Shown piece by piece: positions 25,429 through 59,885 of a DNA stretch of 64,000 bases (position 1 is the stretch's first letter; each line of letters opens with the position of its first letter). The notes under the pieces are model-generated. The model ran no database searches. It worked only from the letters and a program-made list of their open reading frames with translations, and was not told where the DNA came from. The stretch is from Schmidtea polychroa (Eukaryota), in the NCBI GenBank assembly GCA_044892525.1, contig CM097888.1, positions 89,838,001 to 89,902,000 on the forward strand, read 5' to 3'. The position numbers were made by a program, and so were the translations under genes.

Positions 25429-25540
25429 ATCAGTAAGGCTAGATCAGTAAGGCTGGATCAGTAAGGCTAGATCAGTAAGGCTGGATCAGTAAGGCTGGAT
25501 CAGTAATGCTAGATCAGTAAGGCTGGATCAGAAAGGTTGG
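25429..25540. repeat. 14-bp minisatellite, 8 units (ATCAGTAAGGCTRG)
   Basis: Units read directly from the sequence, with AG or GG endings. Confidence 0.95.
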
Positions 25541-29479: not shown

Positions 29480-32400
29480 AATCGACACGTCACTTACTTG
29501 TAGTGAAACCAACAAAAACAAGTCCCTTACTAGATTAGAGGTCAAGTTCGAAGTATTTTTCTATCAACGTTTCACACCTTCGTAATTATTATGATAAAAG
29601 AAACTCCTTGGGAGACACTACATGTTAGTAATGTGAATCAGAAACAGGTTGGGATTAACAAGTAATGGAGCACCAACGGTCTCGCACGGGCCGTAGTTTG
29701 ACCACCCTTACATTATAAGAGTAAGTTTAAAAATGAAGGTTAATTCAGAGAATGCTCAACCTTTACGTTTGCCAAAATTTGTCAACATAGAATTTAATGT
29801 CAAATAAAAAACAGCCATTTCCTAAGCGTTTCAAAGATTTCCTCTCTAATTAATGAATATTAGTATAAAAAAATATTTTATTATATAAAATTTGTTTGTT
29901 TAAATAATCAAATTCAAAACGCCAATTTTTCACAATTTTCATCGACGATGAAAACAAGTTTGGGGAGACCTGTAAATTGTGCAATTCTAGACACAGACCT
30001 TTATAGGTTCCATTGACTGATATCTTTCTTCACAGCGCAATGAACGGTGATACGTTGACCAACACTATAAGGCTTTGGAAATTTTGATCGTTTTCAATAC
30101 AACCTTCAGAGATTATCCTCGATTATTTGTTTACATGATGTGGTGAAACCTTTACTTACTGATAACTTGCAACAGGTTGAGATTATATAGAAATTCACGA
30201 TGTAAAATGAACGAACTGACTGCTATAGCTATCCGCTTACAGTACCATTTGGAAAGTATGTGATGGAGACATCCGTCATGTCACTGCATTTGCAATTTTT
30301 GATGACGATTATAACCATTTTGGCCCTCGACGTTTTCAAATTTGTAATAAAATTTAATTAACATTATTTATTCATTCATAATTCAATAGATGAATATTAA
30401 ATTGTGAAAGCATTTTTGTGTTTTTAATATTAGATTAGCAAATGTCCACTTAGGTTCGCAGCTATAATACTTTGTGAAATGATCTTTTCTGTCATAATAT
30501 CTTCTGAATCTGGTGTAGACTACCTAGTTTCTCCACTATTCCAGGATAATCTTTCAATAAGATCCTCACCTGGAAGCCCATATTTACGAGAGCTTAATTG
30601 TAACCATGGTAATTATATTCTAATGACTGGTTTTTATAAGCTCAAGGGCCACATGAGAAACAATATGAAGTTATTTTCTGTGTTTCTATTGTTAAATATT
30701 CTTCTTATTTTAACCAAGATGAAACTTTTCTATGAAGAATGGCTCCAGTAAATGTCATGCTGCCCTGGTTCCAAAAAATGATTTCAATATTAAGAGTAAC
30801 CAAAAGTACCTCTAACTACAATGAAAAATACTCTTTTCTATCTTTCTGAAATTAAAAAAATCAATATAAAACAAAATCAATATAAAACAACAAAGATAAA
30901 GCACTATCAAATTTATTAGTTAATAAAAGTTATAAAATAAATGGAAATATAGAAAGATATAAAAAGTATGCAAAATATACGCGAGTTGCAATAATAGGAT
31001 TAATCCAATGGAGGCCTCTCAAACACCATTGACAACGTATCCACCAAGGGTGTCAGACTGGATGTCAAGCTGCCATCTATTCTATCAAGAGTTATCCTAG
31101 CTCCATCGACTCCAATAACACTCTGCAAATACATTTCCAAATGCTGTGAATTCCATTTCTCTAGACGATCCGACATAATCGATATTGGGTTTCCTCGTGG
31201 ATTCCCCACAATTTCTATGTTTGAGCTGCCAGTTCCTTTATTATCAACTATTTCAATCACGATCGATTTCAAAAGCTCCTCTGATGGACGGAGCTCTTCC
31301 ACTTTATAAATTGAATCAAAGTTTGATTGGCTCCAGACAATCAATTGTGCCAACTGATCTCGAATCTCTTTTATTAAACTATTTTTCTCGATCAGACTCA
31401 TTTCACCAAGAAAATCTTTCAACATCTTTTCGTTAACAATGATTGAGACTGGACTCGAGATTTCCTCACAAAGGATACCAGCCAACACAGCAGTAATTGC
31501 ATTCATTGTAAATAGAGGAAATTGCAAACTTTCAACCGATGCAAATCTGTAAAAAGTGAAAATCGGAAAATAGAGGTTTCCTTAACTTGATAATCTCGCA
31601 ATCATCGAGATACCCTTCAAAAGGAATGTGGACGTTAAAATCAATCATTTGTGAAATTGCTGTTAGGATCACGCCAAATTAATATTCAATTAAAATAATT
31701 TCATGAGCAAACAACAATAAATAAATAGATAGGATATCAAATTGAATATTGCAACTTTGTAAATAACCAAAGTAAAATGAAAATCATTAACAAATGCAAG
31801 AAGTATTACAAGAAATAAATGCAAACATTATAAATATGAATAACGCAATAAAAGCAAATTCAAAATAATAAGAAATTACGAATACAAAATAAAAGATTTA
31901 ATCGAAAAAATAAGTGAAAATTCCCTCCAAAAATGATTAAAATTAAATCAAGAAATAACTCGAATAAAAATTATTTCAATTGTTTTAATGAATCAATGTA
32001 TCCACTCCAAATTCAAATATTTTTCCAAGTTTTTATGTCCAATTGGCCAATTCGTACTTAATTGATAATTGTACTTTATTATTGTTATAAGGTAATTGCA
32101 TTTCTGTTTATGTTATCTATGCTTTTTATTTTGTTTTAATCTATCATTGTATATTTTGTGTGTAAGAGCTAGTTTGTCTAAATAATCAATTTATCTTAGA
32201 TCGATATTTCGAATTTTCTATTGTTTTTCGAATCCGGCAGCGTAATTCCAGTTCAGGATCGATGACTCAACCAAGGTTATAAACCATAGAACCAGAAAGT
32301 GGTAGATCAAGATACAGGCGATGAACAACAACGTAAAGTTTCTCGATATCGATCACGCTTCATGATATCCCATGAAGTACAACGCGTGACTGACTCAATT

Positions 32401-34292: not shown

Positions 34293-35285
34293 TTATCTTT
34301 CTGAAATTAAAATATCAATAAATAGTAAAATCAATATAAAACAAAATCAATATAAAACAAAATCAATATAAAACAACAAAGATAAAGCACTATCAAATTT
34401 ATTAGTTAATAAAAGTTATAAAATAAATGGAAATATAGAAAGATATAAAAAGTATGCAAAATATACGCGAGTTGCAATAATAGGATTAATCCAATGGAGG
34501 CCTCTCAAACACCATTGACAACGTATCCACCAAGGGTGTCAGACTGGATGTCAAGCTGCCATCTATTCTATCAAGAGTTATCCTAGCTCCATCGACTCCA
34601 ATAACACTCTGCAAATACATTTCCAAATGCTGTGAATTCCATTTCTCTAGACGATCCGACATAATCGATATTGGGTTTCCTCGTGGATTCCCCACAATTT
34701 CTATGTTTGAGCTGCCAGTTCCTTTATTATCAACTATTTCAATCACGATCGATTTCAAAAGCTCCTCTGATGGACGGAGCTCTTCCACTTTATAAATTGA
34801 ATCAAAGTTTGATTGGCTCCAGACAATCAATTGTGCCAACTGATCTCGAATCTCTTTTATTAAACTATTTTTCTCGATCAGACTCATTTCACCGAGAAAA
34901 TCTTTCAACATCTTTTCGTTAACAATGATTGAGACTGGACTCGAGATTTCCTCACAAAGGATACCAGCCAACACAGCAGTAATTGCATTCATTGTAAATA
35001 GAGGAAATTGCAAACTTTCAACCGATGCAAATCTGTAAAAAGTGAAAATCGGAAAATAGAGGTTTCCTTAACTTGATAATCTCGCAATCATCGAGATACC
35101 CTTCAAAAGGAATGTGGACGTTTAAATCAATCATTTGTGAAATTGCTGTTAGGATCACGCCAAATTAATATTCAATTAAAATAATTTCATGAGCAAACAA
35201 CAATAACCAAAGTAAAATGAAAATCATTAACAAATGCAAGAAGTATTACAAGAAATAAATGCAAACATTATAAATATGAATAACA
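34293..35285. repeat. Partial third copy of the duplicated block (carries the 175-aa ORF)
   Basis: Matches about 30838-31850 with a deletion of about 60 bp; abuts the start of the exon array. Confidence 0.9.
34486..35013 (-). CDS. Orphan 175-aa ORF, copy 2 (protein identical to copy 1)
   Basis: Identical translation in the ORF track. Confidence 0.5.
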   Translation of the reverse strand: MQFPLFTMNAITAVLAGILCEEISSPVSIIVNEKMLKDFLGEMSLIEKNSLIKEIRDQLAQLIVWSQSNFDSIYKVEELRPSEELLKSIVIEIVDNKGTGSSNIEIVGNPRGNPISIMSDRLEKWNSQHLEMYLQSVIGVDGARITLDRIDGSLTSSLTPLVDTLSMVFERPPLD

Positions 35286-38200
35286 AAATAAATGCAGCAC
35301 CAAGTTGTTCACCCGCCAGTGGTGGTGAATGTCCAGTGGATGAGTGAGTGAATGTCCCGCCAGTGGATGAGGGAGTGAATGGCCGACCAGTGGATGAGGG
35401 AGTGAATGGCGGTCATCAACCACCAGCAGCACCAGGTGGTATTGAAGCGGTGCTGCAAGGTATTTTTTTTTATATATAATATTTTTAATAATTTTTTTAG
35501 TGCATCCTGTACAAGTTGTTCACCCGCCAGTGGATGAGGGAGTGAATGTCCCGCGAGGTGGATGAGGGAGTGAAATTAATTTTTTTAGTTCATCCTGTAC
35601 AAGTTCACTCGCCAGTGGTGGTGGCTGTCGGCCAGAAGCACCAGGTAGGAGCTTCTTGGTGTATTATACAGTGATAATGTGTTTACGCCTCAGACACATC
35701 ATAAGAATTTCTTTGTAATTAATCGCATCACACGCTTTATTTGTGCAAAACCATTTAACGTGTCCAATAACTTGAGATTGAGCCATGATTGAATTGGAAA
35801 CATTGGATAATTGTTCAACACTTTGGCTTGTAAACATTTGAATTGTGTTAATCCTTGTAAGAGCTCGATTAAATAGAATATCATATTCATAAGTTAGCAA
35901 GTTTATCTTTTTATCGCTAATTAAATCATTGATTTCCAATCGTTTTGATAAACTTTGAAAAATTGAATTAATGTAAATTAGAAATTTTGAAATATAAACG
36001 AATTCATAAAAATCTTGATTATCTATGACATTTACATTACTTCCATTAATAATTTCAACGATCTTGTTGAGTCATGGACGAGTTTCACTGCTGAAAAGAC
36101 ATCTCTTCGCTATATTGCTCATTGAAATACGACATATCAAACATTCATTATCTTCCATATTTCACTAAGGCCGAAAATTCAAAACTGAATTACCAAAATT
36201 ATAAATCATTTATAAATTACAAATCATTTTCAAAATCGATCGAATTTCAAAAACACAAAAAAATCTGACTCGATCAAAACTCAACTCATAATAATCACAA
36301 TTGTCCGCGTCTGTGTGCGCACACAAAAGACTCCAAAAACCAGTACAAAGCGCACACAGGCGCGAGAACCGATAATCAACTCACAAAAAACGGCACTAAT
36401 CGCGTCTGTGTGCGCACACAAACCCAATCTCAAATGTAAACAGAGAACGCACACAAACGCGACAAACTAGTAATTAACCATAATGAATATGTTCAAAAGA
36501 GCAACCATTGCTGATTTATAACCCATCATACTTAAAGCCCCATCAGTAGAAATTCCAGACAACAAATTAATATTTATTCTATTTTCATCAACTGAACTAC
36601 ATAGGGCTTCAAAAATGTGTCAATTCCTCTTGTGGTTCCCTTTAAACTTTCAAGTCATAAGAACATAAATAAGACATAAATAAGACATAAATCGCAGGAT
36701 TAATCGATATTAATATTATAATTATTTTAATTTTTAGCAATACAACAGCAAATGCAAGCAATGCAAATAATGGAAATAAATTGTATTAATTGCTGCAACC
36801 AGCCTGGGGGCATAGATTGTGAGATAGATCACTCCGCTTTGATTAATAAATTTCACTGTTAATAAAAGTTCACTGTCACATTTGCTCCAGGATTGAACGT
36901 GCCTCCGCGCCGGCGCGGCACATTAAAAGGAGTATATTTTATTTTAGATGAAAGGATTAATCGATTAATGGAAAATAATTGCATAAGTTGTTGCAATCAG
37001 CCTGGGGCAAACAATTGTCCCAATGACCATTGTCAATTGATTAAGTACATTGTCACATTTGCTCCAGGATTGTACGTGCCTCCAGGCTGGCGCGGCACAT
37101 TAAAAGGAGTAATTTATTTTTTTATTATATATATTTTATTTAATTTTTTTAGTGCATCATTCCCGCCAGGGGTGGTGCCTACCCCGACAAGTGAGCATAA
37201 CACGACAGGGGAGGATAACCCGACAGGGGAGGATAACCCGACAGGGGAGGATAACCCGACAGAGGAGCATAACCCGACAGGGGAGCATAACCCGACAGGG
37301 GAGGATAACCCGACAGGGGAGGATAACCCGACAGGGGAGGATAACCCGACAGGGGAGCTTAACCCGACAGGGGAGGATAACCCGACAGGGGAGGATAACC
37401 CGACAGGGGAAGATAACGAAAGGATTATTCGATTAATGGAAAATAATTGCATAAGTTGTTGCAATCAGCCTGGGGCAAACAATTAAAAGGAGTAATTTAT
37501 TTTTTTATTATATATAATATTTTAATTAATTTTTTTAGTGCATCGTGCCCCGCCAGGGGTGGTGCCTACCCCGACTGTAAAGATTTTATTGTTAAACCAA
37601 GTAAATTGGTCAACTAAACCCTGGATAATTAACAGAAAATTAAAAAGACATTACTCTAAAAGTAAACCATAAATTAATTTAATGCATTCATCACATCCTA
37701 ATATTAAATCCATTAAATCCTCATTAAATCCAACCGACTATATCCCCCTTAAAAATCATATATTCTACCTTAACCGATCACTCATTAAATCATACCGACT
37801 ATATCCCTTGAGGTTATATTCAATCCTCTTAAAATCCTTAGAGAATTCTTCAAAAATATGAATTTTCTTTAACTTACAGACACCATAATTAATAATTCAA
37901 ATGGGTGAAAACAAGCGGTAGAACTATTCATTAATGGATTATGGGAGGTAAATACTGAGAAGTGGCTTAGATAAGATGGAGATGTATTAATTGAATTTAT
38001 TTAAATTATTTCATAAAAATTATCACTTTAATGAAAGTATTTTAAAAAGAAATATTTTTGTGAGGAGGATATAAGTGAAAATAATTAGTTGAATATAAGT
38101 GATTAAATAATAATTAGTGGAATATAGAAAATCGGGGGAATATAAGTGAGAAGGATTTTCTATAAGCTTCGGCATTGTTTATCATCATGGATTTTGTTGT

Positions 38201-41200
38201 TTATCATTCATGGGCATTACATTCATGCTCTCATCCTATCATCAAAATATTAAAACAAATTTAGACAGAATTATTTGAATATGAGGAATGAGGAATGCTC
38301 CAATTCATTTCACAACAATAATTATTATATATTAACTTAATTTCAATGATAAAATAATATCAGAATCCAGCAAGTATTTAGCACATGCAATGACAACTGG
38401 GAGACTTTTGATGAGTTCATTTTTGATTTTTAGGTCATCCAGAAGTTATTCAACCAAAAGTTATTATTATCAGTGAACCACCAGCAGCAGCACCAGTTGG
38501 TATTGAAGCGCTGCTGCAACAACTGCGAGTTGAGATAGCAGGAGACCAACAACAAACGGTAGCTGCCCGTGAGCAGAGATAGCAGGAGACCAACAACAAA
38601 TGCGAGTTATAAATGAATTGCCAATGTCAGATGATCGAACAATTAAATCATGCAATAGCTGGAGGTTGCATTTGCCTGTTGCAACGAAGCAGGTCGCAAT
38701 AGATCAGGTGACAATAGCAGCTGCTCGAGAACATACATAATTCATAAATATCGCCAACTTATAAACTCCTCTGATTCATTAACCACCATAAAATATTTCT
38801 AATTTTCTATTATTATTATTAATATTAATATTAGTTGCTGCAACCAGCCTGGGGGGGGGGGGGGGCAACGACCAAGTGATAGAAGCAATTAAAAAATTCA
38901 ATAAATCTAAGGTACGTTGCCCCGCGTGCCAAAGGATTTTACGTACCTCCGGGCTGGAGTGGCACTTAAAAAAGAGTAATTTATTTTTTTTTATATAATA
39001 TTTTAATTAATTTTTTTAGGGCATCCTGTGAATGAGGTGATCCAGCCAGGGAGAGAGAACCAGGGAGAAGAAGGGAATGGCCCGCAGGTGGAAGAGCAAG
39101 GAAATGGCCCGCAGGTGGAAGAACAAGGGGGGCAACGACCAAGTGATAGAAGCAATTAAAAAATTCAATAAATCTAAGGTACGTTGCCCCGCGTGCCAAA
39201 GGATTTTACGTACCTCCGGGCTGGAGTGGCACTTAAAAAAGAGTAATTTATTTTTTTTTATATAATATTTTAATTAATTTTTTTAGGGCATCCTGTGAAT
39301 GAGGTGATCCAGCCAGGGAGAGAGAACCAGGGAGAAGAAGGGAATGGCCCGCAGGTGGAAGAGCAAGGGAATGGCCCGCAGGTGGAAGAGCAAGGGAATG
39401 GCCCGCAGGTGGAAGAACAAGGGAATGGCCCGCAGGTGCAAGAACAAGGGAATGGCGGTCTCCCATCAGGTGGTGGTATTGGTCAGCCACCAGCAGGTGG
39501 TATTGATCAGCCGCCAGTAGCACCAAGTGGTATTGAAGCGGCGCTACGAGGTATTTCTAAAATTTAAAAATATTATAATTATTATAATTTTTAGCTATAA
39601 ATGATAGGCTGAATATCATGGCAGCAGATATGGCACCTAGATTTGCAGGTAATTTATATTTATTATATAATATTTTAATTAATCTTTTCAGTGCATGCTG
39701 AGGTGGTCCCGCGAGGGGAGCATAACACGACAGGGGAGCATAACCCGACAGGGAGTGAATTACCAATGTGGAATGTTCGATCAAATTAACGAAGCAATCC
39801 AAAGAAATTGCATGAATTGCTGCCACCAGCCTGGTGTTGGACCTTGTCCAACAGGTCATCTGGAGATGATTAAAAAAATTAATCATTCCAAGGTGCATTG
39901 CACACAGTGCACCAGGATTGTACGTGCCTTCGGGCTGGCGCGGCACATTAAAAGGAGTAATTTATTTTTTTATTATATATATTTTATTTAATTTTTTTAG
40001 TGCATCATTCCCGCCAGGGGTGGTGCCTACCCCGACAAGTGAGCATAACACGACAGGGGAGGATAACCCGACAGGGGAGGATAACCCGACAGGGGAGGAT
40101 AACCCGACAGGGGAGGATAACCCGACAGAGGAGCATAACCCGACAGGGGAGCATAACCCGACAGGGGAGGATAACCCGACAGGGGAGCTTAACCCGACAG
40201 GGGAGGATAACCCGACAGGGGAGGATAACCCGACAGGGGAAGATAACGAAAGGATTATTCGATTAATGGAAAATAATTGCATAAGTTGTTGCAATCAGCC
40301 TGGGGCAAACAATTAAAAGGAGTAATTTATTTTTTTATTATATATAATATTTTAATTAATTTTTTTAGTGCATCGTGCCCCGCCAGGGGTGGTGCCTACC
40401 CCGACTGTAAAGATTTTATTGTTAAACCAAGTAAATTGGTCAACTAAACCCTGGATAATTAACAGAAAATTAAAAAGACATTACTCTAAAAGTAAACCAT
40501 AAATTAATTTAATGCATTCATCACAACCTAATATTAAATCCATTAAATCCTCATTAAATCCAACCGACTATATCCCCCTTAAAAATCATATATTCTACCT
40601 TAACCGATCACTCATTAAATCATACCGACTATATCCCTTGAGGTTATATTCAATCCTCTTAAAATCCTTAGAGAATTCTTCAAAAATATGAATTTTCTTT
40701 AACTTACAGACACCATAATTAATAATTCAAATGGGTAAAAATAAGCGGTAGAACTATTCATTAATGGATTATGGGAGGTAAATACTGAGAAGTGGCTTAG
40801 ATAAGATGGAGATGTATTAATTGAATTTATTTAAATTATTTCATAAAAATTATCACTTTAATGAAAGTATTTTAAAAAGAAATATTTTTGTGAGGAGGAT
40901 ATAAGTGAAAATAATTAGTTGAATATAAGTGATTAAATAATAATTAGTGGAATATAGAAAATCGGGGGAATATAAGTGAGAAGGATTTTCTATAAGCTTC
41001 GGCATTGTTTATCATCATGGATTTTGTTGTTTATCATTCATGGGCATTACATTCATGCTCTCATCCTATCATCAAAATATTAAAACAAATTTAGACAGAA
41101 TTATTTGAATATGAGGAATGAGGAATGCTCCAATTCATTTCACAACAATAATTATTATATATTAACTTAATTTCAATGATAAAATAATATCAGAATCCAG

Positions 41201-42569
41201 CAAGTATTTAGCACATGCAATGACAACTGGGAGACTTTTGATGAGTTCATTTTTGATTTTTAGGTCATCCAGAAGTTATTCAACCAAAAGTTATTATTAT
41301 CAGTGAACCACCAGCAGCAGCACCAGTTGGTATTGAAGCGCTGCTGCAACAACTGCGAGTTGAGATAGCAGGAGACCAACAACAAACGGTAGCTGCCCGT
41401 GAGCAGAGATAGCAGGAGACCAACAACAAATGCGAGTTATAAATGAATTGCCAATGTCAGATGATCGAACAATTAAATCATGCAATAGCTGGAGGTTGCA
41501 TTTGCCTGTTGCAACGAAGCAGGTCGCAATAGATCAGGTGACAATAGCAGCTGCTCGAGAACATACATAATTCATAAATATCGCCAACTTATAAACTCCT
41601 CTGATTCATTAACCGCCATAAAATATTTCTAATTTTCTATTATTATTATTAATATTAATATTAGTTGCTGCAACCAGCCTGGGGGGGGGGCAACGACCAA
41701 GTGATAGAAGCAATTAAAAAATTCAATAAATCTAAGGTACGTTGCCCCGCGTGCCAAAGGATTTTACGTACCTCCGGGCTGGAGTGGCACTTAAAAAAGA
41801 GTAATTTATTTTTTTTTATATAATATTTTAATTAATTTTTTTAGGGCATCCTGTGAATGAGGTGATCCAGCCAGGGAGAGAGAACCAGGGAGAAGAAGGG
41901 AATGGCCCGCAGGTGGAAGAGCAAGGAAATGGCCCGCAGGTGGAAGAACAAGGGGGGCAACGACCAAGTGATAGAAGCAATTAAAAAATTCAATAAATCT
42001 AAGGTACGTTGCCCCGCGTGCCAAAGGATTTTACGTACCTCCGGGCTGGAGTGGCACTTAAAAAAGAGTAATTTATTTTTTTTTATATAATATTTTAATT
42101 AATTTTTTTAGGGCATCCTGTGAATGAGGTGATCCACCCAGGGAGAGAGAACCAGGGAGAAGAAGTAATGGCCCGCAGGTGGAAGAGCAAGGGAATGGCC
42201 CGCAGGTGGAAGAACAAGGGAATGGCCCGCAGGTGCAAGAACAAGGGAATGGCGGTCTCCCATCAGGTGGTGGTATTGGTCAGCCACCAGCAGGTGGTAT
42301 TGATCAGCCGCCAGTAGCACCAAGTGGTATTGAAGCGGCGCTACGAGGTATTTCTAAAATTTAAAAATATTATAATTATTATAATTTTTAGCTATAAATG
42401 ATAGGCTGAATATCATGGCAGCAGATATGGCACCTAGATTTGCAGGTAATTTATATTTATTATATAATATTTTAATTAATCTTTTCAGTGCATGCTGAGG
42501 TGGTCCCGCGAGGGGAGCATAACACGACAGGGGAGCATAACCCGACAGGGAGTGAATTACCAATGTGGA

Positions 42570-43492
42570 ATGTTCGATCAAATTAACGAAGCAATCCAAA
42601 GAAATTGCATGAATTGCTGCCACCAGCCTGGTGTTGGACCTTGTCCAACAGGTCATCTGGAGATGATTAAAAAAATTAATCATTCCAAGGTGCATTGCAC
42701 ACAGTGCACCAGGATTGTACGTGCCTCCGGGCTGGCGCGGCACATTAAAAGGAGTAATTTATTTTTTTATTATATATATTTTATTTAATTTTTTTTGTGC
42801 ATGTTGAGGTGATCCCGCCAGGGCCGACAGATAACCAGAGAGAAGATCAAGTAGAGATTGTAGCGAATGACCCGCTAGTGGATGAAGAAGTGAATGGCGG
42901 TCCCCTAGCAGGAGGTGGTATATATACTTTATAAATATTATAATTATTTTAATTTTTAGGAATGCAAAATCAAATTAATGAAATGGAGCAAAATGTGGGA
43001 CAACAAATAGTTCAACAAATAGCAGCTGCCCAGCAACAAATAGGTCAACAAATGGCTGCCCTGCGAGCAGATATTGCAGCAGATATGGCACCTAGATTTG
43101 CAGGTAATTTATATTTATTATATAATATTTTAATTAATCTTTTCAGTGCATGCTGAGGTGGTCCCGCGAGGGGAGCATAACACGACAGGGGAGCTTAACC
43201 CGACAGGGGAGCATAACCCGACAGGGGAGCATAACCCGACAGGGGAGCATAACACGACAGGGGAGCATAACCTTGCGGTGCTGCAAGGTATTTATAAAAT
43301 TTATAAATATTATAATTATTTTAATTTTTAGCTATTCAACAAATGAAAGGCAGGCTGGATGGCATGGCAGCTGCCCAAAATGGCATGGCAGCTGCCCAAA
43401 ATGGCATGGCAGCTGCCATAAACGAAATAAATGGAAGACTTGATGCTCTTGAGGCGAGTGTCGGTGCACTGGATAATTGTTTTCGAAATTGA
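42570..43492 (+). CDS. Spliced model join(42570-42753,42798-42917,42960-43103,43147-43287,43332-43492), 249 aa: Zn module, acidic linker, Q-rich coiled coil, (EHNPTG)n, heptad (GMAAAQN)n coiled coil
   Basis: Four phase-1 introns (44, 42, 43 and 44 nt) keep the frame open to TGA at 43490. The first acceptor is TG rather than AG (42796-42797), so this copy may be broken or miscalled. Confidence 0.55.
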
Positions 43493-44426
43493 AAGGGGAG
43501 CATAAGCCGACAGGGGAGCATAACCCGACAGGGGAGCATAACACGACAGGGGAGCATAACCCGACAGGGGAGCATAACCCGACAGGGGAGCATAACCCGA
43601 CAGGGGAGGATAACCAGACAGGGGAAGATAACGAAAGGATTATTCGATATTAATATTATAATTATTTTAATTTTTAGCAATACAACAGCAAATGCAAGCA
43701 ATGCAAATAATAGAAATAAATTGTATTAATTGCTGCAACCAGCCTGGGGGCATAGATTGTGAGATAGATCACTCCGCTTTAATTAATAATTTTTCACTGT
43801 TAATAAAAGTTCACTGTCACATTTGCTCCAGGATTGTACGTGCCTCCGGGCTGGCGCGGCACATTAAAAGGAGTATATTTTATTTTAGATAAAAGGATTA
43901 TTCGATTAATGGAAAATAATTGCATAAGTTGTTGCAATCAGCCTGGGGCAAACAATTGTCCCAATGACCATTGTCAATTGATTAATCAATTTAATCAATC
44001 TAAAGTACATTGTCACATTTGCTCCAGGATTGTACGTGCCTCCGGCCTGGCGCGGCACATTAAAAGGAGTAATTTATTTTTTTATTATATATATTTTAAT
44101 TAATTTTTTTAGTGCATCGTTCCCGCCAGGGGTGGTGCCTACCCTGACAAGTGAGCATAACCCGACAGGGGAGGATAACCCGACAGGGGAAGATAACGAA
44201 AGGATTAATCGATATTAATATTATAATTATTTTAATTTTTAGCAATACAACAGCAAATGCAAGCAATGCAAGCAATGCAAATAATGGAAATAAATTGTAT
44301 TAGTTGCTGCAACCAGCCTGGGGTGGGCAACTGCCAAGAAAATCACAGCGAGGTGATTAAAAAATTTAACCAGTCAAAAGTAACAATAAATATTTTTAAA
44401 AATATTAAAATTTGTTTTTATTTTAG

Positions 44427-44938
44427 ATGAATTGCAATTGCCAAATGTCAGCTCAAATTAATGAAGCAATCGAAAGCAATTGCTTGATTTGCTGTCACGA
44501 ACCTGCTGTTGGACCGTGTCAAACAGATCATCTTGGGATGATCAAAAAAATTAATCATTCCAAGGTGCATTGCACACAGTGCACCAGGATTGTACGTGCC
44601 TCCGGGCTGGCGCGGCACATTAAAAGGAGTAATTTATTTTTTTATTATATATATTTTATTTAATTTTTTTAGTGCATCATTCCCGCCAGGGGTGGTGCCT
44701 ACCCCGACAAGTGAGCATAACACGACAGGGGAGGATAACCCGACAGGGGAGGATAACCCGACAGGGGAGGATAACCCGACAGGGGAGGATAACCCGACAG
44801 AGGAGCATAACCCGACAGGGGAGCATAACCCGACAGGGGAGGATAACCCGACAGGGGAGCTTAACCCGACAGGGGAGGATAACCCGACAGGGGAGGATAA
44901 CCCGACAGGGGAAGATAACGAAAGGATTATTCGATTAA
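44427..44938 (+). CDS. Spliced model join(44427-44628,44673-44938), 155 aa: Zn module followed by a basic (ITRQGR/S)n tail
   Basis: ATG directly after a TTTTAG acceptor; canonical 44-nt GT-AG intron; splicing completes the C2H2 finger (HIKR-M-H). Confidence 0.5.
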
Positions 44939-47812
44939 TGGAAAATAATTGCATAAGTTGTTGCAATCAGCCTGGGGCAAACAATTAAAAGGAGTAATTT
45001 ATTTTTTTATTATATATAATATTTTAATTAATTTTTTTAGTGCATCGTGCCCCGCCAGGGGTGGTGCCTACCCCGACTGTAAAGATTTTATTGTTAAACC
45101 AAGTAAATTGGTCAACTAAACCCTGGATAATTAACAGAAAATTAAAAAGACATTACTCTAAAAGTAAACCATAAATTAATTTAATGCATTCATCACAACC
45201 TAATATTAAATCCATTAAATCCTCATTAAATCCAACCGACTATATCCCCCTTAAAAATCATATATTCTACCTTAACCGATCACTCATTAAATCATACCGA
45301 CTATATCCCTTGAGGTTATATTCAATCCTCTTAAAATCCTTAGAGAATTCTTCAAAAATATGAATTTTCTTTAACTTAGACACCATAATTAATAATTCAA
45401 ATGGGTAAAAATAAGCGGTAGAACTATTCATTAATGGATTATGGGAGGTAAATACTGAGAAGTGGCTTAGATAAGATGGAGATGTATTAATTGAATTTAT
45501 TTAAATTATTTCATAAAAATTATCACTTTAATGAAAGTATTTTAAAAAGAAATATTTTTGTGAGGAGGATATAAGTGAAAATAATTAGTTGAATATAAGT
45601 GATTAAATAATAATTAGTGGAATATAGAAAATCGGGGGAATATAAGTGAGAAGGATTTTCTATAAGCTTCGGCATTGTTTATCATCATGGATTTTGTTGT
45701 TTATCATTCATGGGCATTACATTCATGCTCTCATCCTATCATCAAAATATTAAAACAAATTTAGACAGAATTATTTGAATATGAGGAATGAGGAATGCTC
45801 CAATTCATTTCACAACAATAATTATTATATATTAACTTAATTTCAATGATAAAATAATATCAGAATCCAGCAAGTATTTAGCACATGCAATGACAACTGG
45901 GAGACTTTTGATGAGTTCATTTTTGATTTTTAGGTCATCCAGAAGTTATTCAACCAAAAGTTATTATTATCAGTGAACCACCAGCAGCAGCACCAGTTGG
46001 TATTGAAGCGCTGCTGCAACAACTGCGAGTTGAGATAGCAGGAGACCAACAACAAACGGTAGCTGCCCGTGAGCAGAGATAGCAGGAGACCAACAACAAA
46101 TGCGAGTTATAAATGAATTGCCAATGTCAGATGATCGAACAATTAAATCATGCAATAGCTGGAGGTTGCATTTGCCTGTTGCAACGAAGCAGGTCGCAAT
46201 AGATCAGGTGACAATAGCAGCTGCTCGAGAACATACATAATTCATAAATATCGCCAACTTATAAACTCCTCTGATTCATTAACCACCATAAAATATTTCT
46301 AATTTTCTATTATTATTATTAATATTAATATTAGTTGCTGCAACCAGCCTGGGGGGGGGGGGGCAACGACCAAGTGATAGAAGCAATTAAAAAATTCAAT
46401 AAATCTAAGGTACGTTGCCCCGCGTGCCAAAGGATTTTACGTACCTCCGGGCTGGAGTGGCACTTAAAAAAGAGTAATTTATTTTTTTTTATATAATATT
46501 TTAATTAATTTTTTTAGGGCATCCTGTGAATGAGGTGATCTAGCCAGGGAGAGAGAACCAGGGAGAAGAAGGGAATGGCCCGCAGGTGGAAGAGCAAGGA
46601 AATGGCCCGCAGGTGGAAGAACAAGGGGGGCAACGACCAAGTGATAGAAGCAATTAAAAAATTCAATAAATCTAAGGTACGTTGCCCCGCGTGCCAAAGG
46701 ATTTTACGTACCTCCGGGCTGGAGTGGCACTTAAAAAAGAGTAATTTATTTTTTTTTATATAATATTTTAATTAATTTTTTTAGGGCATCCTGTGAATGA
46801 GGTGATCCAGCCAGGGAGAGAGAACCAGGGAGAAGAAGGGAATGGCCCGCAGGTGGAAGAGCAAGGGAATGGCCCGCAGGTGGAAGAGCAAGGGAATGGC
46901 CCGCAGGTGGAAGAACAAGGGAATGGCCCGCAGGTGCAAGAACAAGGGAATGGCGGTCTCCCATCAGGTGGTGGTATTGGTCAGCCACCAGCAGGTGGTA
47001 TTGATCAGCCGCCAGTAGCACCAAGTGGTATTGAAGCGGCGCTACGAGGTATTTCTAAAATTTAAAAATATTATAATTATTATAATTTTTAGCTATAAAT
47101 GATAGGCTGAATATCATGGCAGCAGATATGGCACCTAGATTTGCAGGTAATTTATATTTATTATATAATATTTTAATTAATCTTTTCAGTGCATGCTGAG
47201 GTGGTCCCGCGAGGGGAGCATAACACGACAGGGGAGCATAACCCGACAGGGAGTGAATTACCAATGTGGAATGTTCGATCAAATTAACGAAGCAATCCAA
47301 AGAAATTGCATGAATTGCTGCCACCAGCCTGGTGTTGGACCTTGTCCAACAGGTCATCTGGAGATGATTAAAAAAATTAATCATTCCAAGGTGCATTGCA
47401 CACAGTGCACCAGGATTGTACGTGCCTCCGGGCTGGCGCGGCACATTAAAAGGAGTAATTTATTTTTTTATTATATATATTTTATTTAATTTTTTTAGTG
47501 CATCATTCCCGCCAGGGGTGGTGCCTACCCCGACAAGTGAGCATAACCCGACAGGGGAGGATAACCCGACAGGGGAAGATAACGAAAGGATTAATCGATA
47601 TTAATATTATAATTATTTTAATTTTTAGCAATACAACAGCAAATGCAAGCAATGCAAGCAATGCAAATAATGGAAATAAATTGTATTAGTTGCTGCAACC
47701 AGCCTGGGGTGGGCAACTGCCAAGAAAATCACAGCGAGGTGATTAAAAAATTTAACCAGTCAAAAGTAACAATAAATATTTTTAAAAATATTAAAATTTG
47801 TTTTTATTTTAG

Positions 47813-48541
47813 ATGAATTGCAATTGCCAAATGTCAGCTCAAATTAATGAAGCAATCGAAAGCAATTGCTTGATTTGCTGTCACGAACCTGCTGTTGGAC
47901 CGTGTCAAACAGATCATCTTGGGATGATCAAAAAATTTAATCACTCTAAGGTGCACTGCACACAGTGCAATAGTATTTTACGTGCCTCCGGGCTGGAGCG
48001 GCACATCATTTTAATTCGTGACAGCATTTTAATTAATTTTTTTAGTGCATCGTTCCCGCCAGGGGTGGTGCCTACCCCGACAAGTGAGCATAACCCGACA
48101 GGGGAGGATAACACGACAGGGGAGCATAACACGACAGGGGAGCATAACCCGACAGGGGAGCATAACCCGACAGGGGAGCATAACCCGACAGGGGAGCATA
48201 ACCCGACAGGGGAGCATAACCCGACAGGGGAGCATAACCCGACAGGGGAGCATAACCCGACAGGGGAGCATAACCCGACAGGGGAGCATAACCCGACAGG
48301 GGAGCATAACCCGACAGGGGAGCATAACCCGACAGGGGAGCATAACCCGACAGGGGAGCATAACCCGACAGGGGAGCATAACCCGAGAGGGGAGCATAAC
48401 CCGAGAGGGGAGCATAACCCGAGAGGGGAGCATAACCCGAGAGGGGAGCATATCATTAAATGGATAAGTCAAAACATTCCATTTCAAAAGGTTTTTGGGT
48501 TACTTTCACTCTCATTGTTATTAGTTCAACAACGTCATTAA
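47813..48541 (+). CDS. Unspliced 242-aa ORF: Zn module, exonised former intron, 20 x (EHNPTG)
   Basis: The donor is lost after ERHI; the former intron reads through as ILIRDSILINFFS, in frame with the 18-bp repeats (48086-48450). Confidence 0.45.
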   Translation: MNCNCQMSAQINEAIESNCLICCHEPAVGPCQTDHLGMIKKFNHSKVHCTQCNSILRASGLERHIILIRDSILINFFSASFPPGVVPTPTSEHNPTGEDNTTGEHNTTGEHNPTGEHNPTGEHNPTGEHNPTGEHNPTGEHNPTGEHNPTGEHNPTGEHNPTGEHNPTGEHNPTGEHNPTGEHNPTGEHNPRGEHNPRGEHNPRGEHNPRGEHIIKWISQNIPFQKVFGLLSLSLLLVQQRH

Positions 48542-48731
48542 ATAAGAGTTTTTCAAGATCGTCTAAGGAAGTATTTCTATTACCACCTTTAATTCTTTCC
48601 ATAGAATTAGATTGGTAACATTTGCCATCTTTCATGTATTTAACAACTTATTACAATATTTAAAATAGTTATATTAAAATATTAAAAATAACAATAAATA
48701 TTTTTAAAAATAATATTTGTTTTTATTTTAG

Positions 48732-49897
48732 ATGAATAATTTTTCCTGTCAGTTAAAAGAGAAAATTAGAGAATTAATGCAAGAAAATACAATTAGTTTC
48801 TGCAACCAGCCTGGGGTGGCCAACTACCAAGTAAAAGAAGTTATTAAAAAATTTAATAAATCTAAGGTACGTTGCCCCGCGTGCCAAAGGATTTTACGTG
48901 CCTTTTACGTGTTACACTTGAAGCGGTGCTGGAAGGTATTTATAAACTTTATAAATATTATAATTATTTTAATTTTTTTAATTAAAGCTATAAAAAATAA
49001 AATCATGGAATATTCAATCAAAAATAAAGAAAATAAATGTCTATTGTACCAAGGCTATGAATATACAAAATATAGGGAAAACCAAGGCGGAGTCGTCACC
49101 TGGAGATGCAGAATCTACTTTTCCACGAAATGCCGAGCATTGTTGAAAACACAAGGAGAAAACATCGTTGGAGAGGTCCCTCAACACTGCCATCAATCAA
49201 ATCCTCAAAAAGCACAGGCAAATATTTTAAAGGCTAAGATTAAGAAGGACATAAAAGCAATTGGTGCAACTCCAAGAAATATTCTGGGAAATGCCTTAGC
49301 ATTAGTAAGTAGCGATGTTTTGGAACATTTACCAAAGCAATCCTCACTCACAAGAAATCTTGGTAGACATAAGGAAACTTTTTCTTTGCCGAATCCAGCT
49401 ACAACTGATTTTATTATACCAGAGAAATTTCTTGATCTCATTTTATATGATACAGGAACTGATGATCCAGAAAGAATATTGGCAATCGGGAATAATGATA
49501 TTGTCTAAGAGCTACACAAGGATGTCATTTATGGAGACGGAACATTTGATAAAGCACCTAAATGGATCTATCAGCTGTATACATGGCATGCTAAGATTGG
49601 AAATTCATATTCTCCATGTATATATTTTCTTTTACAAAAAAAGAATATGAGTACATACAACAGGATGTTTGTAATACTAAAGGAACCACCAGCAGCACCA
49701 GTTAATATTGAAGCGGTGCTGCAAGGTATTTATAAAATTTATAAATATTATAATTATAATTTTTAGCTATACAGCAAATGCAACATACTATACAACAAAT
49801 ACAAAATACTCAAAACGATCTCAAAGCTGATCTCGAGGCGAGGGTCGATGCACTGGAGCTACTCAAAATGACATGGCAGCTGCCCAAATCGAAATGA
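48732..49897 (+). pseudogene. Chimera: Zn module, FLYWCH, MULE transposase N-half, array linker and coiled coil; one premature TAA at 49506
   Basis: LLYQGYEY...TWRC...KCRA...HCH (FLYWCH, about 49040-49195); YGDGTFDKAP...QLYT (MULE first catalytic Asp); joins EPPAAPVNIEAVLQ in frame at 49683, then a 41-nt intron at 49726-49766. Confidence 0.8.
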
Positions 49898-52023
49898 ATG
49901 GCAGGCTGAATGCTCTTGAGTGAACCATCAGTTTCAGAAATAACGAGTTGTTTAGTCATCGAGTTTTTTTCAATAAATGCCGCTGACACATGTCCAGTGC
50001 CTTTATCATCCTATAATATATAAATGATAATAAATATAATATATAATAAAATTTAAAATTTATAGTAAAATTTATAAACTCCATGTTGAAAATTAATAAA
50101 TTAAAACAAAATACAAATAATGTTTTCCAAATTTTATTAATTGATTCTAATTTTTATGATATTTTAATATATTAATATTACTGTATAAGGTCAAAAATTT
50201 CTCGTAGATTAATGTAATAAATTGGAAGATGAAAATCGTTAATAGCATCTCTCAAAAATAGATTTTTTAATCTTTATAAAGATTGGCTATTTGTTAAATT
50301 TCGAAATACGTTATCACAATTTTCTGAAAATTGAAATTACATTGATTAGACCTTGTTCAACATCAAATTGTCGCTTATCCAAAGTTATGTTATACGTTAT
50401 TGTCTTTCAATTGAAGATTTTCGCAACTATTGCTATTTGACCTATTTATCTTTTTTTAAGTTGAATATGATACGATAATAACAAATACATGTATAAAATA
50501 TATCATCTGTTGAATTTAATAAATAGTTAATTTAAAAATAATTTTAAAAAATGCATACAATAAATTCTCATCTACGTTGTAAATTGACAAAAACTAACTT
50601 TAAAATTTCAAACTTTTTCTGTGAAACATCCACAACTGACAGATCTGTATATTTTTTAAGCATCTGTAAGGAAACATAATTTACAGTTCAAATTATATCA
50701 TAAAATATCACATAATCCTTTTGAGTGGCATAGGATTAAAACTGATACTTTTTGATCAACTTAAGTCTATAAATAATTTAGTAAGAATAGATTATTCTAT
50801 CAATTTACCATTTTAAACTCTAATAAATCCTGGATAACAAGAATCATATATGCAGCGGTAATCTGGCTGAAATAATTAAATGACACCGGTTTGAATATCA
50901 GTTGGCTGATCATAATTTAATTCTGATAAAGTCTGCTTATTAATATATAAAAATTATTTAAAAAATTATGAAAAAACAACCTTTGGTCTAAATGGAATTC
51001 ATCAAAACTTGCATCCATTACTAATACTTTCAAATAAATGTAATATTAAAACAAATTATATTTATGTTAAAAAGTATTTATATTAAAGCATTGTTCTATT
51101 TTATTTTTAATTTTAAAAAAATATGGTGAATATTAAAGCATTGGTTTATTTTATTTTTAATTTTAAAAAAATATGGTTAAAAAATAGTTATTATAAGAAT
51201 TATTAATCTGACAAAAAAAAGTTATTAAAAACAAACAAATAATAGTTAAATCTGACTTGTTTCTAAAAGACTTGATATCCTTCATTAGTTTATTTATTAC
51301 AATTTCTCTTTTTTTATAAAAGTGCCAATACCAATTATTTTAAGACCAGTAATAATATTATTCCTTTATTAAAATTTCCTCAAGTCACTCGATTTTTCTT
51401 TCTTTCATACTCTCTTGAGAGTGAAATTTGACTCGATGAGGTGAAGGAAATCTGATGATTTCGTATGGGTTGGCGTATTGCAGTTCCTTACTAATACCTC
51501 ATCATACAATGTAAAATTATGACAACCTTTCTTTTTCGTGCCCATATCTATCATATAATTAGCCGCTTTATATAAGTAAACTAAAGTAGATTTTTTAATA
51601 TTTATAAATATTGGCTATTTGTTAAATTTTAAAATACGTTATCACAATTTTCTGAAAATTGAAATTACATTGATTAGACATTGTTAAACATCAAATTGTC
51701 ACTTATCCAAAATTATGTTATACTTATTGTCTTTCAATTGAAGATTTTCGCAACTATTACTATTTCGCAACGTCCTTTTATAATATTTTCTAGATTTTAC
51801 TAATTAATTTTCATAATAAATTTTTCTTTTTATTTAAGTAATATCGTTCAAATATATTCATTCTAATTAGATTACCTTAGATTAGATTATTTGTTGAGTC
51901 ATTTGTTCTTGGGCAGCTGCCATTTGTTGATCTAATTATGGTCATTCATTCTGTGTATATTTCGTTCGAGAATATATTCCTAATCGCTTAACCTGTCCAC
52001 TAGATACATAGAAAATCAATTAC

Positions 52024-54639: not shown

Positions 54640-55747
54640 GAGCTCGTTTTTCTTTTGAGGTTCATCAGTTTTGGAAAAATAGGAGTACTCCATATTTCGT
54701 TGGTGGACCAGTAAATTCTTTCTTCCGATTTTTTGATAATCCCCTGAAGTATGCTAATTGCAAGAAATATCATAATTTCATTTTATCCACGTTTCTCCAT
54801 TGAGTGGTAGATCCGCCAGGTTGTTGTTCAGCATATCTATTTGTTTCTAATATTATAATATTTAACACTGAATCATCAAAAAGCAATTTGAAGTACTCCA
54901 ATACATCATAATTGTCGTCAAGAACAAACGTTGTACCTGGAGCGGCAATATATGGAAATCTTGGTGGAGGTGGATTTGGTTGGCTAACACATACCTGCTT
55001 CCAATCAGCAGCGATATCTTCATCTGAACTATCTTCAGATTCACTGGAATAGTGTTCAGATTCTTCTGAACCACTTTCCGAAAAATTTGCGTATTCTGAT
55101 TCGGAATCGCTCATTTTCTATATATATTTTATTAAATTAAATTTAAAATAAAATAATATTCTTTATTTCAACATTAGAAAACATACCTTTTATACACTAA
55201 AATTCAAATTTACTCTCTATAAAAATAACACCATAAAACAAAACCGTTTTTATATACACTTACTTTAGCTTACAACGATGTATAGGAATGGTTTGGCAAA
55301 AAAATTAACCAAGTACTTTATACTTCGCTAAATAGATACGCACATTTATTATATAAGAAATAAATGATTCCTTTTACAACTTCTTTATACTTCGCTATAT
55401 TTTACTTCTACTATACTATACTTTACTTCACAACTTGCATAACTGAAAATCGAAAAATAAATGAAAGAAACTGACTCAAAATGCTTTAAATTTTTTGTTT
55501 ATACAAGTGTTTGTGTAAAAAACACGAAAATATATACGAAAAAAAATCTTTGTTCGCTCTCTGTTTATTCCTGAATAAGCAAAATATAGAGAGCGATCGG
55601 AGAAAACTGGAGAGTGATAAATAAATTAGTCATAACAAAAAAACTCGTATATATATACTCGTAAATATTAAAAACGTATATATACGTCTCTGCACATTTT
55701 GGTCGGTTTTGCGCGCCCGTATATATACGTTTGTGTGCGTTAAGGGG
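54640..55747 (-). mobile_element. piggyBac (PGBD4-like) 5' fragment with left TIR and frameshifted N-terminal transposase
   Basis: Acidic N-terminus, EYFKLLFDDSVLNIIILETNRYA, then after a frameshift IMIFLAISILQGIIKK...YWSTNEIWSTPIF; TIR CCCCTTAACGCAC at 55735-55747. Confidence 0.85.
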
Positions 55748-56212: not shown

Positions 56213-58961
56213 AATGTGTTTTATCATTTAATAATTCATTTATCCAATCAATTTAGATAATTAGTTTTAAGTAAGAATTATTATTTTTTCACGAAAGACT
56301 GTTTTGTTTTTTTTTGAAAAATTAATACCCATTTTATTTAAAATTAGCACAGTTTTATTTTATAATAATTCTAATAATTACTAATTAAAGTCATATTCAA
56401 ATTGATATATTATTATTATTATTTACACTCTTGTTAGAATATATTAATTGTAAATGTAAAAAAATAAAATAAATAAAAAATGAAATAAAATAAAAAAAAA
56501 TTAATAAAAAAAACAAATTGATTAATTAATTAATAAGTAAATTAAAATAAATAAATAATTAAATAATTAATTAAAAATAAATAAATAAAAATTGACTTAT
56601 ATTTAATCTAGACATTGGGATAACCTTGAAAGTGCGTTGGAGTCCTTACATCTTACTACTATCTTTAATATTCAAAATCTTTCACTGCCCCTGAATTCAC
56701 TAATAGCAATTAATCTATAACCATAAAACTACTACTTTGATCGTTGGATTCATAATTATATGATGAAGGCTTTATTTCAATATTAAAATAATTCATATTA
56801 TATGAACCATAAGAAGTATTCGAGTTGCTATAAGAAACACTCGGATGATCCGATATATCACTACTTCTAAAATGATATTAATGTGTGAACCTTGACCTCT
56901 GTAACAAAGATTCAGCATTATTAAATACACATAATAACAAAAATGAGTGAGAAATTTAATATTAGATTACCTAAATTAAAATATAATTTTGCGCTCAGGT
57001 AATTAGTTATTGAAGCATTTACGGGAGGGGGAGGGGCAAACTGATTTTGTGCATGATGCGCTGGAGCTAGAATATTTGTTTTCATCTTGACTATTCTTGA
57101 TACCATCTTGTTATTATTTGACACGTTGGCTTTTGTTCACTTCTTTAATAGATACATTGGATTTCTAATTCTTTATCCACCTGATATACATTTATGATTA
57201 GTTCCCATACTTGTTTCTAACTCTTATCAGGCCCTACCCGTTGGAACTGAGTTCGATGTCAACCACTTTTGGTTTAAATGTCATTTTCTTGGCTTTGTTT
57301 TTCTTTGGTAGTTCTTATTAATTTGCATGCTTCATTTGCTGAACTGTAAGAAATGTAACTCAATTGGTCTGAATGAAAACCTACAGTTCAGATAGAGAAA
57401 ATATTAGGAAGATTCAAATTACATAATATGTGTCAGAAGTCAAGGAAATGAAGAATGCACATTAATCGACACGTCACTTAGTTGTAGTGAAACCAACAAA
57501 AACAAGTCCCTTACTAGATTAGAGGTCAAGTTCGAAGTATTTTTCTATCAACGTTTCACACCTTCGTAATTATTATGATAAAAGAAACTCCTTGGGAGAC
57601 ACTACATGTTAGTAATGTGAATCAGAAACAGGTTGGGATTAACAAGTAATGGAGCACCAACGGTCTCGCACGGGCCGTAGTTTGACCACCCTTACATTAT
57701 AAGAGTAAGTTTAAAAATGAAGGTTAATTCAGAGAATGCTCAACCTTTACGTTTACCAAAATTTGTCAACATAGAGTTTATTGTCAAATGAAAAACAGCC
57801 ATTTCCTAAGCGTTTCAAAGATTTCCTATCTAATTATTGAATATTAGTATAAAAAATTATTTTATTATATAAAATTTGTTTGTTTAAATAATCAAATTCA
57901 AAACGCCAATTTTTCACAAGTTTGGGGAGACCTGTAAATTGTGCAATTCTAGACACAGACCTTTATAGGTTCCATTGACTGATATCTTTCTTCACAGCGC
58001 AATGAACGGTGATACGTTGACCAACACTATAAGGCTTTGGAAATTTTGATCGTTTTCAATACAACCTTCAGAGATTATCCTCGATTATTTGTTTAAATGA
58101 TGTGGTGAAACCTTTACTTACTGATAACTTGCAACAGGTTGAGATTATATAGAAATTCACGATGTAAAATGAACGAACTGACTGCTATAGCTATCCGCTT
58201 ACAGTACCATTTGGAAAGTATGTGATGGAGACATCCGTCATGTCACTGCATTTGCAATTTTTGATGACGATTATAACCATTTTGGCCCTCGACGTTTTCA
58301 AATTTGTAATAAAATTTAATTAACATTATTTATTCATTCATAATTCAATAGATGAATATTAAATTGTGAAAGCATTTTTGTGTTTTTAATATTAGATTAG
58401 CAAATGTCCACTTAGGTTCGCAGCTATAATACTTTGTGAAATGATCTTTTCTGTCATAATATCTTCTGAATCTGGTGTAGACTACCTAGTTTCTCCACTA
58501 TTCCAGGGGTTTCTTTCAATAAGATCCTCACCTGGAAGCCCATATTTACGAGAGCTTAATTGTAACCATGGTAATTAGATTCTAATGACTGGTTTTTATA
58601 AGCTCAAGGGCCACATGAGAAACAATATGAAGTGATTTTCTGTGTTTCTATTGTTAAATATTCTTCTTATTTTAACCAAGATGAAACTTTTCTATGAAGA
58701 ATGCCTCCAGTAAATGTCATGCTGCCCTGGTTCCAAAAAATGATTTCAATATTAAGAGTAACCAAAAGTACCTCTAACTACAATGAAAAATACTCTTTTC
58801 TATCTTTCTGAAATTAAAAAAATCAATATAAAACAAAATCAATATAAAACAACAAAGATAAAGCACTATCAAATTTATTAGTTAATAAAAGTTATAAAAT
58901 AAATGGAAATATAGAAAGATATAAAAAGTATGCAAAATATACGCGAGTTGCAATAATAGGA

Positions 58962-59489: not shown

Positions 59490-59885
59490 ACTTTCAACCG
59501 ATGCAAATCTGTAAAAAGTGAAAATCGGAAAATAGAGGTTTCCTTAACTTGATAATCTCGCAATCATCGAGATACCCTTCAAAAGGAATGTGGACGTTAA
59601 AATCAATCATTTGTGAAATTGCTGTTAGGATCACGCCAAATTAATATTCAATCAAAATAATTTCATGAGCAAACAACAATAAATAAATAGATAGGATATC
59701 AAATTGAATATTGCAACTTTGTAAATAACCAAAGTAAAATTAAAATCATTAACAAATGCAAGAAGTATTACAAGAAATAAATGCAAACATTATAAATATG
59801 AATAACGCAATAAAAGCAAATTCAAAATAATAAGAAATTACGAATACAAATAAAAGATTAATCGAAAAAATAAATGAAAATTCCC

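Follow-up and report, generated by a model that had tools for sequence, protein, structure and literature searches.

A mosaic array of Cys/His-module exons in Schmidtea polychroa, probably a lineage-restricted gene amid recently amplified and mostly broken copies

Introduction

What kind of locus is made of short exon-like segments that recur in changing order around the same small introns, and that mostly cannot be joined in frame? The question is raised by an array of about 14.6 kb in the planarian Schmidtea polychroa, which lies within a stretch of 64 kb (positions 89,838,001 to 89,902,000 of contig CM097888.1, assembly GCA_044892525.1; hereafter the window, in whose own numbering all positions are given) and whose segments encode a module of about 60 residues rich in paired Cys and His, together with linkers, short repeats and coiled coils. 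A preliminary description of this sequence had offered several answers: a rapidly recombining gene family, a locus that generates protein diversity, or the accessory gene of a transposon. Our analysis makes it probable that the locus is a lineage-restricted planarian gene accompanied by a recombining and very recently amplified array of mostly broken copies. This reading draws on the Cys/His residues retained by diverged copies of the module, on the places where blocks of homology begin and end, and on one long open path across conserved introns.

Results

The Cys/His module

A six-frame pattern scan of the window found 11 copies of the first half of the module (C-x2-C-C-x7-C-x3-H) and 14 of the second (K-V-x-C-x2-C-x11-H), all confined to 36.7–48.0 kb of the forward strand, which bears out the module array first described. 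By chance the first pattern would be expected roughly 0.03 times in 64 kb, a figure to be read with the copies in mind as duplicates of one another and not as independent events. Both halves stand in one frame in seven copies, representing five variants (a, present three times, b, c, d and e) with 44–80% identity to the first variant. Variants b and c lie back to back at 43677–44067 (+), with what remains of an intron and a repeat exon between them, and a degenerate module, variant h (48732–48935, +), has lost most of the Cys and His residues of its first half and lies directly upstream of a transposon piece described below.

Module exons begin in phase 0 and end in phase 1, and the last His of the second finger is supplied from beyond the splice, as had been proposed: a codon split by an intron of about 44 nt, here called type A, reads A/TG CAT or A/GG CAT (the slash marks the intron) and places a His four residues beyond the first. 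Among five diverged variants all five ligand columns of the first half are invariant, compared to one of the 12 other columns (hypergeometric p ~0.001). Since the ligand residues are kept across variants that have otherwise diverged, the module must have been under constraint in the past. Two zinc sites are predicted for the module.

Relatives of the module

A profile search with eight variants against 1.84 billion representative proteins found no relatives of the whole module or of its first half. It returned five weak matches (best E = 1.1e-7), restricted to the second finger, all of them tandem C-x2-C-x11-H-x4-C/H fingers. Nothing in Pfam matched the module at threshold, and the sub-threshold matches all fell on the second half: Sgf11 (PF08209) in four of the eight variants (E = 0.0017–0.016), with a best score of 17 bits compared to a gathering score of 26.4; zf-C2HC_2 (PF13913) in two (E = 0.0063) and ZNF512_C2HC (PF21276) in one (E = 0.0014), neither of which was listed among the matches of the first variant; and zf-WRNIP1_ubi, which was not significant (E = 0.12). 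A profile search of the PDB placed Sgf11 (E = 0.097) and the UBZ4 finger of WRNIP1 (3vhs; E = 0.16) at the top, both over the same 22 residues and neither significantly. A word-index search with a 98-residue open reading frame (ORF) gave no match, degenerate-pattern scans for the module in metagenome and viral contigs gave none either, and exact look-ups found no record of the window's proteins. An AlphaFold2 model of the module, built from an eight-row alignment, is mostly helical and of middling confidence (predicted local distance difference test score, pLDDT, 69.6); Foldseek comparisons of it to the PDB and BFVD gave only noise, with nothing below E = 5.

The opinion that no described family is involved thus agrees with Pfam, with two very large protein searches and with the fold comparison. 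To judge from sequence, the module is undescribed and its first element matches nothing known, while the second finger resembles the group formed by UBZ4 (WRNIP1, Rad18), Sgf11 and the C2HC fingers of ZC2HC1 and ZNF512 and cannot be assigned to any of them. The likeness consists in the second-half spacing C-x2-C-x11-H-x4-(H), in the hydrophobic residue that precedes the first Cys, and in Ala/Ser-Gly-Leu ahead of the His. The UBZ-type likeness proposed earlier is one of spacing, at scores that are all sub-threshold. UBZ4 itself has C-x2-C-x11-H-x4-C, whereas the fourth ligand of the module is a His encoded by the next exon, and the module's finger is fused to an upstream C-x2-C-C-x7-C-x3-H element for which nothing comparable was found.

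Anatomy of the array

The array occupies 35297–49924 on the forward strand and is built of exon-like segments (module, linker, repeat and coiled coil) parted by short introns. Its left edge, near 35297, is the point where a truncated copy of a repeat that we call L ceases to match the full copies, and it is at this junction that the preliminary description had placed the start; its right edge is the stop codon of the last coiled-coil exon. Besides the module we find the exon types reported earlier, namely PVDEGVN and GNGPQVEEQ linkers made of 27-nt repeats, EHNPTG or EDNPTG exons made of 18-nt repeats, a Q-rich coil and a GMAAAQN coil with a 21-nt repeat. The longest 18-nt minisatellite (48076–48452, +; 20.9 copies, 98% matches) reads EHNPTG in one frame and GSITRQ in another, and shorter arrays of the same repeat are scattered throughout. 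The last coiled-coil exon (49767–49924, +), a homologue of the terminal exon of the model M1 described below, has a stop codon, carries one frameshift and is followed by AATAAA about 60 nt downstream.

The array includes the three units of about 2.8 kb first described, all on the forward strand and here measured at 99.6–99.8% identity: U1 (37153–40000, 2848 bp), U2 (40001–42797, 2797 bp; 99.57% identical to U1) and U3 (44673–47498, 2826 bp; 99.68% identical to U1 and 99.82% to U2), the last parted from the other two by 1.9 kb of distinct sequence. They differ by 13 substituted columns in 2.85 kb and by indels confined to the 18-nt and 27-nt minisatellites and to one G homopolymer; such identities mean that the triplication is very recent. 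The homopolymer lies at the start of a second half-module, and its varying length among U1–U3 could be real or a homopolymer error of long reads.

All three units include a 0.9-kb spacer that looks non-coding, along with old coding pieces that have degenerated. In U1 an exon of EDNPTG repeats, joined to a first half-module that is cut short, is found together with a 1.4-kb segment that comprises the spacer and the degenerate pieces, two 267-bp chimeras of linker and second half-module, a linker exon of GNGPQVEEQ type, a coil exon of 54 nt and a chimeric exon of repeat and module. The two chimeras form a tandem duplication (38860–39396, +; 99% identity) carrying the second half-module of variant g (KVRCPACQRILRTSGLEWHLKK), which recurs in U2 at 41685–42220 and in U3 at 46358–46894. 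An intron-less junction in the degenerate pieces of the 1.4-kb segment was checked as a possible retrocopy of a spliced transcript; the pieces are too diverged to be aligned to the M1 exons. Between and after the units lie older stretches (42798–44672 and 47499–49924) that are related to each other, and links of about 93.5% identity connect 36696–37237 with 43636–44197 and 43979–44919 with 47365–48292.

Where the blocks of homology end

The introns are about 44 nt long, more than 90% AT and bounded by GT..AG, and they fall into two or three families with near-identical members in each. The variants a, b and c are only 53–57% identical over the first ~124 aligned nucleotides of the module exon and 81–93% over the last 68, and the intron that follows is identical at 48 of 50 positions between a and c and at 49 of 50 between a and d and between c and d. 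Exons of different types that come after a type-A intron likewise resemble one another over their first ~20 nt. Of the five long homology blocks, three start 64–90 nt upstream of such an intron, and the blocks end just past it or within an 18-nt repeat. Block edges that lie in a homogenised tract or in coding minisatellites indicate unequal crossing-over, which accords with the earlier suggestion of a rapidly recombining family. The simplest reading of these alignments is that crossing-over of this kind, or gene conversion, took place repeatedly in a tract of about 110–130 nt, together with recombination in the coding minisatellites.

Coding capacity, and whether the array is dead

Splitting the array at its 34 intron-like elements gives 35 segments, of which 29 are short. 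GT..AG borders are present in 29 elements, four having no donor and one no acceptor. An open frame of any kind is found in 17 segments, and nine of the 29 short ones, all linker, coil or repeat exons, are both open and symmetric 1-1, so that the earlier statement that all the downstream exons are of phase 1-1 went too far. Open frames are joined in register at only six of the 34 junctions, and at no more than one per 2.8-kb unit.

An exhaustive search for spliced ORFs over AT-rich GT..AG introns of 38–74 nt recovered the three open models named in the preliminary description. The longest paths encode 283 residues (47643–48541), 267 (42492–43492), 258, 207 (44257–44988) and 193, the path of 258 being the degenerate module read on into the transposon piece. 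Identical searches of the opposite strand and of three other parts of the window gave at most 118 residues for paths with at least two introns, far below the 267-residue path, which crosses four conserved introns.

This path contains the predicted model M1 (42570–43492, +; about 242–250 residues in five exons), which alone has the full order of module (42570–42753), acidic linker (from 42798 or 42822 to 42917), Q-rich coil (42960–43103), EHNPTG repeats (43147–43287) and terminal GMAAAQN coiled coil with stop (43332–43492). Two further models are predicted on the same strand. M2 (44257–44988, 207 residues) consists of a first half-module, the complete variant d and EDNPTG repeats, after which it ends in a truncated half-module with no coiled-coil exons. 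M3 (47643–48541, 283 residues) has a first half-module and variant e, whose frame continues across a shortened intron and on into about 21 EHNPTG repeats, with neither the second His nor a coiled coil. From these frames we consider that one to three copies at most (M1, and perhaps M2 and M3) could still be expressed.

Throughout 37–48 kb the type-A acceptors have a second CAG 17 or 24 nt downstream of the usual one. In several exons use of the downstream CAG would switch the 18-nt repeats from the GRITRQ to the EDNPTG frame at the cost of the second His of the finger, and in several repeat exons a CAG 17 nt past the usual acceptor would restore the EHNPTG frame.

A number of points weigh against the reading preferred here. 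The first intron of M1 lacks the usual AG, an in-frame CAG lying 24 nt downstream; its module exon opens with a chimeric repeat segment; and its terminal exon runs into another partial copy, leaving it with no 3′ untranslated region (UTR) of its own and no poly(A) signal nearby. The gene models are predictions from DNA sequence. Some of the frame breaks could stem from assembly errors in homopolymers or repeat number. Pairwise ratios of non-synonymous to synonymous substitution (dN/dS) among module variants are 0.23–0.73, with dS of 0.16–1.8, but by a rough binomial estimate the closest pairs do not fall significantly below 1, and in the remaining pairs dS is saturated. Finally, because Schmidtea gene sets are poorly represented in the databases, absence from them is weak evidence for lineage restriction.

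Several of these points lend themselves to another explanation, that the locus is dead, its decayed gene pieces forming a macrosatellite, or nested tandem repeat, without any functional copy. The six junctions in register and the five elements lacking a splice site would be expected of it, as would the non-canonical first intron of M1 and its missing 3′ UTR; the last terminal exon, the sole one with a natural 3′ flank, is frameshifted; and no relatives appeared in protein collections that take in assembled RNA runs. Nested tandem repeats are moreover reported to be abundant in Schmidtea genomes (PMC11410931), and the array resembles them in the nesting of 18-, 21- and 27-nt repeats and a 267-bp duplication within 2.8-kb units, in an AT-rich, transposon-rich genome. 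It differs from them in that its units hold recognisable exons, introns and at least one long spliced ORF. An ORF of 267 residues across four introns, so far in excess of the controls, speaks against an entirely dead array, and so do the conserved ligands and the dN/dS below 1 among old variants, though all of this tells of past constraint only and not of present function. On balance we think it improbable, if far from negligible, that no functional copy is left.

A captured transposon fragment

Another way to account for the array would be to make the module gene the cargo or accessory ORF of a mobile element, either Pack-MULE-like or a giant planarian retroelement. The array does contain a piece of a FLYWCH-MULE DNA transposon (48990–49682, +; 693 bp, one in-frame stop), which begins 15 nt before the start codon, covers about half of a 449-residue transposase and lacks the 3′ half and both element ends. 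Its FLYWCH domain (PF04500) scores 36.2 bits compared to a cut-off of 23.6, within the ORF that starts at 48732 with the degenerate module; the MULE stretch gave no Pfam match, and no MULE transposase domain or complete ORF was found in the window. Over 694 aligned columns the fragment is 98.6% identical to positions 398–1090 of L001, a contig of 2002 bp from a low-coverage assembly (ENA ERZ2271605) with an intact ORF for the full-length, 449-residue FLYWCH and MULE protein P0127 (PF10551, 40.6 bits), to which the FLYWCH part is 98% identical. Having inverted subterminal tandem repeats at both ends, L001 appears to be a complete, small MULE of about 2 kb.

The fragment is joined to the array on both sides, its left junction lying within a type-B intron and its right junction at the end of a linker exon, and, since it lacks element ends, it is a captured piece and not an insertion. 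It is not the parent or source of the module: the full element, of about 2 kb, has no module, and the low-coverage assembly, from the same or a sister species, recovered the multi-copy MULE and gave no module protein. No inverted repeats flank the array or the fragment in the window, where only AT-rich, low-complexity inverted matches of 71–79% were found. The gene fragments are consequently not enclosed by MULE terminal inverted repeats as in a Pack-MULE, with which the array shares the presence of MULE sequence beside gene fragments; here the capture went in the reverse direction, the array having taken up an internal piece of a MULE.

The surroundings offer a little more to this explanation, the region being rich in transposon sequence (piggyBac and Penelope-like fragments) and including three copies of L, all in direct orientation, of which two flank the array at a distance of 28 kb from each other. 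The full copies of L (29472–31925 and 57458–59885) are 2.45 kb long and 98% identical, and the truncated copy (34336–35296, +; 99% identity) marks the left edge of the array; each carries an intact minus-strand ORF of 175 residues with no Pfam match. They are accompanied by a duplicated segment (26478–27213 and 63103–64000, 99.8% identical) that holds, on the minus strand, an exon for the C-terminal domain of the host protein ERp29 (Pfam E = 7.7e-24), and we take this as a sign of segmental duplication around the array. With ERp29 exons duplicated beside the L copies, segmental duplication fits better than long terminal repeats, and a giant element with L as its long terminal repeat was not adopted, given also the third, partial copy. 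The sole transposon sequence inside the array being an end-less fragment, and no inverted repeats flanking it, the proposal of a transposon accessory gene finds no support, and we regard a mobile-element origin of the module gene as unlikely.

Programmed diversity and assembly

Arrays of silent cassettes feed gene conversion in several systems, such as the chicken pseudo-V genes and vls of Borrelia. The array recalls these in having partial, frame-broken copies beside one or a few open ones and variable cores flanked by conserved tracts, here the diverged first halves of modules adjoining near-identical exon ends and introns, and its nine symmetric 1-1 exons would in principle be freely combinable. 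It could then be imagined as a programmed generator of diversity, in which partial cassettes serve as donors for gene conversion, or exons are spliced alternatively or in a mutually exclusive way, with the homogenised introns as anchors. The likeness to silent cassettes lies in the sequence and extends to no recognised expression site, somatic change or selective context, and it ends at the newest units: U1–U3 are near-identical and add almost no diversity.

The exon variants are unequal in length and differ in type, and the frame is lost at most junctions, six of the 34 being in register, whereas a mutually exclusive cluster of the Dscam type would have tandem homologous variants of equal length and phase between constitutive exons; five of the 34 elements lack a splice site, and no path exceeds 283 residues. 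As to docking or selector RNA, a comparison of the introns gave AT-rich, low-complexity matches and no specific complementarity, in sequences so rich in AT that they pair trivially. We know of no programmed diversity system of such a kind in flatworms, and the diversity or alternative-splicing locus of the preliminary description is not borne out; we hold it to be very unlikely.

An artefact of assembly, by over-expansion or mis-joining of a shorter repeat, is likewise very unlikely: near-identical units that differ mainly in the copy number of repeats and in one homopolymer might suggest it, but there are 13 substitutions among the units, U3 is set apart by 1.9 kb of distinct sequence, and the higher-order relationships at about 93.5% identity are older and mutually consistent.

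Genomic surroundings

The window is AT-rich (about 22–42% GC in 2-kb bins), and scans of it with Rfam and for transfer RNA genes gave no matches. Upstream of the array lies an intron-less ORF for a rhodopsin-family G-protein-coupled receptor of 542 residues (22361–23989, +), of muscarinic/GAR type, which is 94% identical to Schmidtea mediterranea GCR022 and whose next-best matches are all from flatworms. The receptor thus marks the host as a planarian closely akin to S. mediterranea, though probably distinct from it. An ORF of 913 residues on the minus strand (2478–5219), with a ubiquitin-like domain and DUF7041, could be either a gag-like protein of a retroelement or a host gene. An N-terminal fragment of a piggyBac-type transposase is present at 54770–55114 (−), and a fragment at 60101–60747 (+) with weak reverse transcriptase and GIY-YIG matches appears Penelope-like. 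Two GC-rich tandem repeats with 91% matches, of 26 nt (14170–14304) and 14 nt (25429–25542), stand out amid AT-rich sequence, and there are runs of N at 7095–7303, 18464–18748 and 19249–19413.

Discussion

The reading that we prefer, a lineage-restricted gene with a recombining, recently amplified array of mostly broken copies, can be put as a proposed history. The ancestral gene would have encoded a protein of about 240 residues, with an N-terminal Cys/His module of 60 residues whose last His is encoded by the first complete codon of the following exon, then a linker that is acidic and rich in proline, a coiled coil rich in Q and A, EHNPTG repeats and a C-terminal heptad coiled coil, the coiled coils presumably serving oligomerisation. 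Three processes may then have produced the array: unequal homologous recombination in the homogenised tract of about 110–130 nt, which starts ~65 nt before the end of the module exon, takes in the ~44-nt intron and reaches ~20 nt into the exon beyond; slippage and recombination among the coding minisatellites of 18 and 27 nt; and non-homologous joins, one of which would have captured the 693-bp MULE piece. The last step, in the order of events that we infer, would be the very recent triplication of the 2.8-kb unit, and because that unit was already broken, most of the array is unable to encode the full protein.

In classical exon shuffling, mosaic genes are built from symmetric phase 1-1 exons by recombination within introns. 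The array shares with this its nine open phase-1 segments, multiples of 3 nt in length, the varied order of its modules and the position of its introns within recombining tracts. It differs in that shuffling takes place within one small paralogous locus and with mostly broken products, and in that the recombining tract is a near-identical exon end with its intron, not long unrelated introns.

We also considered a planarian germline cassette system, in which diverged module cores between homogenised exon-end and intron tracts are swapped by gene conversion or at the level of RNA. This seems to us extremely unlikely; if true, it would diversify a zinc-finger and coiled-coil protein, for instance in transposon defence or recognition, and the broken copies would be its donors.

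On present evidence the array opens no long-standing question. Should the module prove to be a true zinc-binding domain, it would be an undescribed one, and the split of its last ligand, along with the UBZ/Sgf11-like finger to which it is fused, would interest those compiling catalogues of small zinc folds. As for genome evolution, the array provides a clean snapshot of rearrangement at the level of exons, by way of homogenised exon-end and intron tracts and coding minisatellites and including the capture of a transposon fragment, and it illustrates how lineage-restricted genes may be both built and destroyed in structurally unstable planarian genomes.

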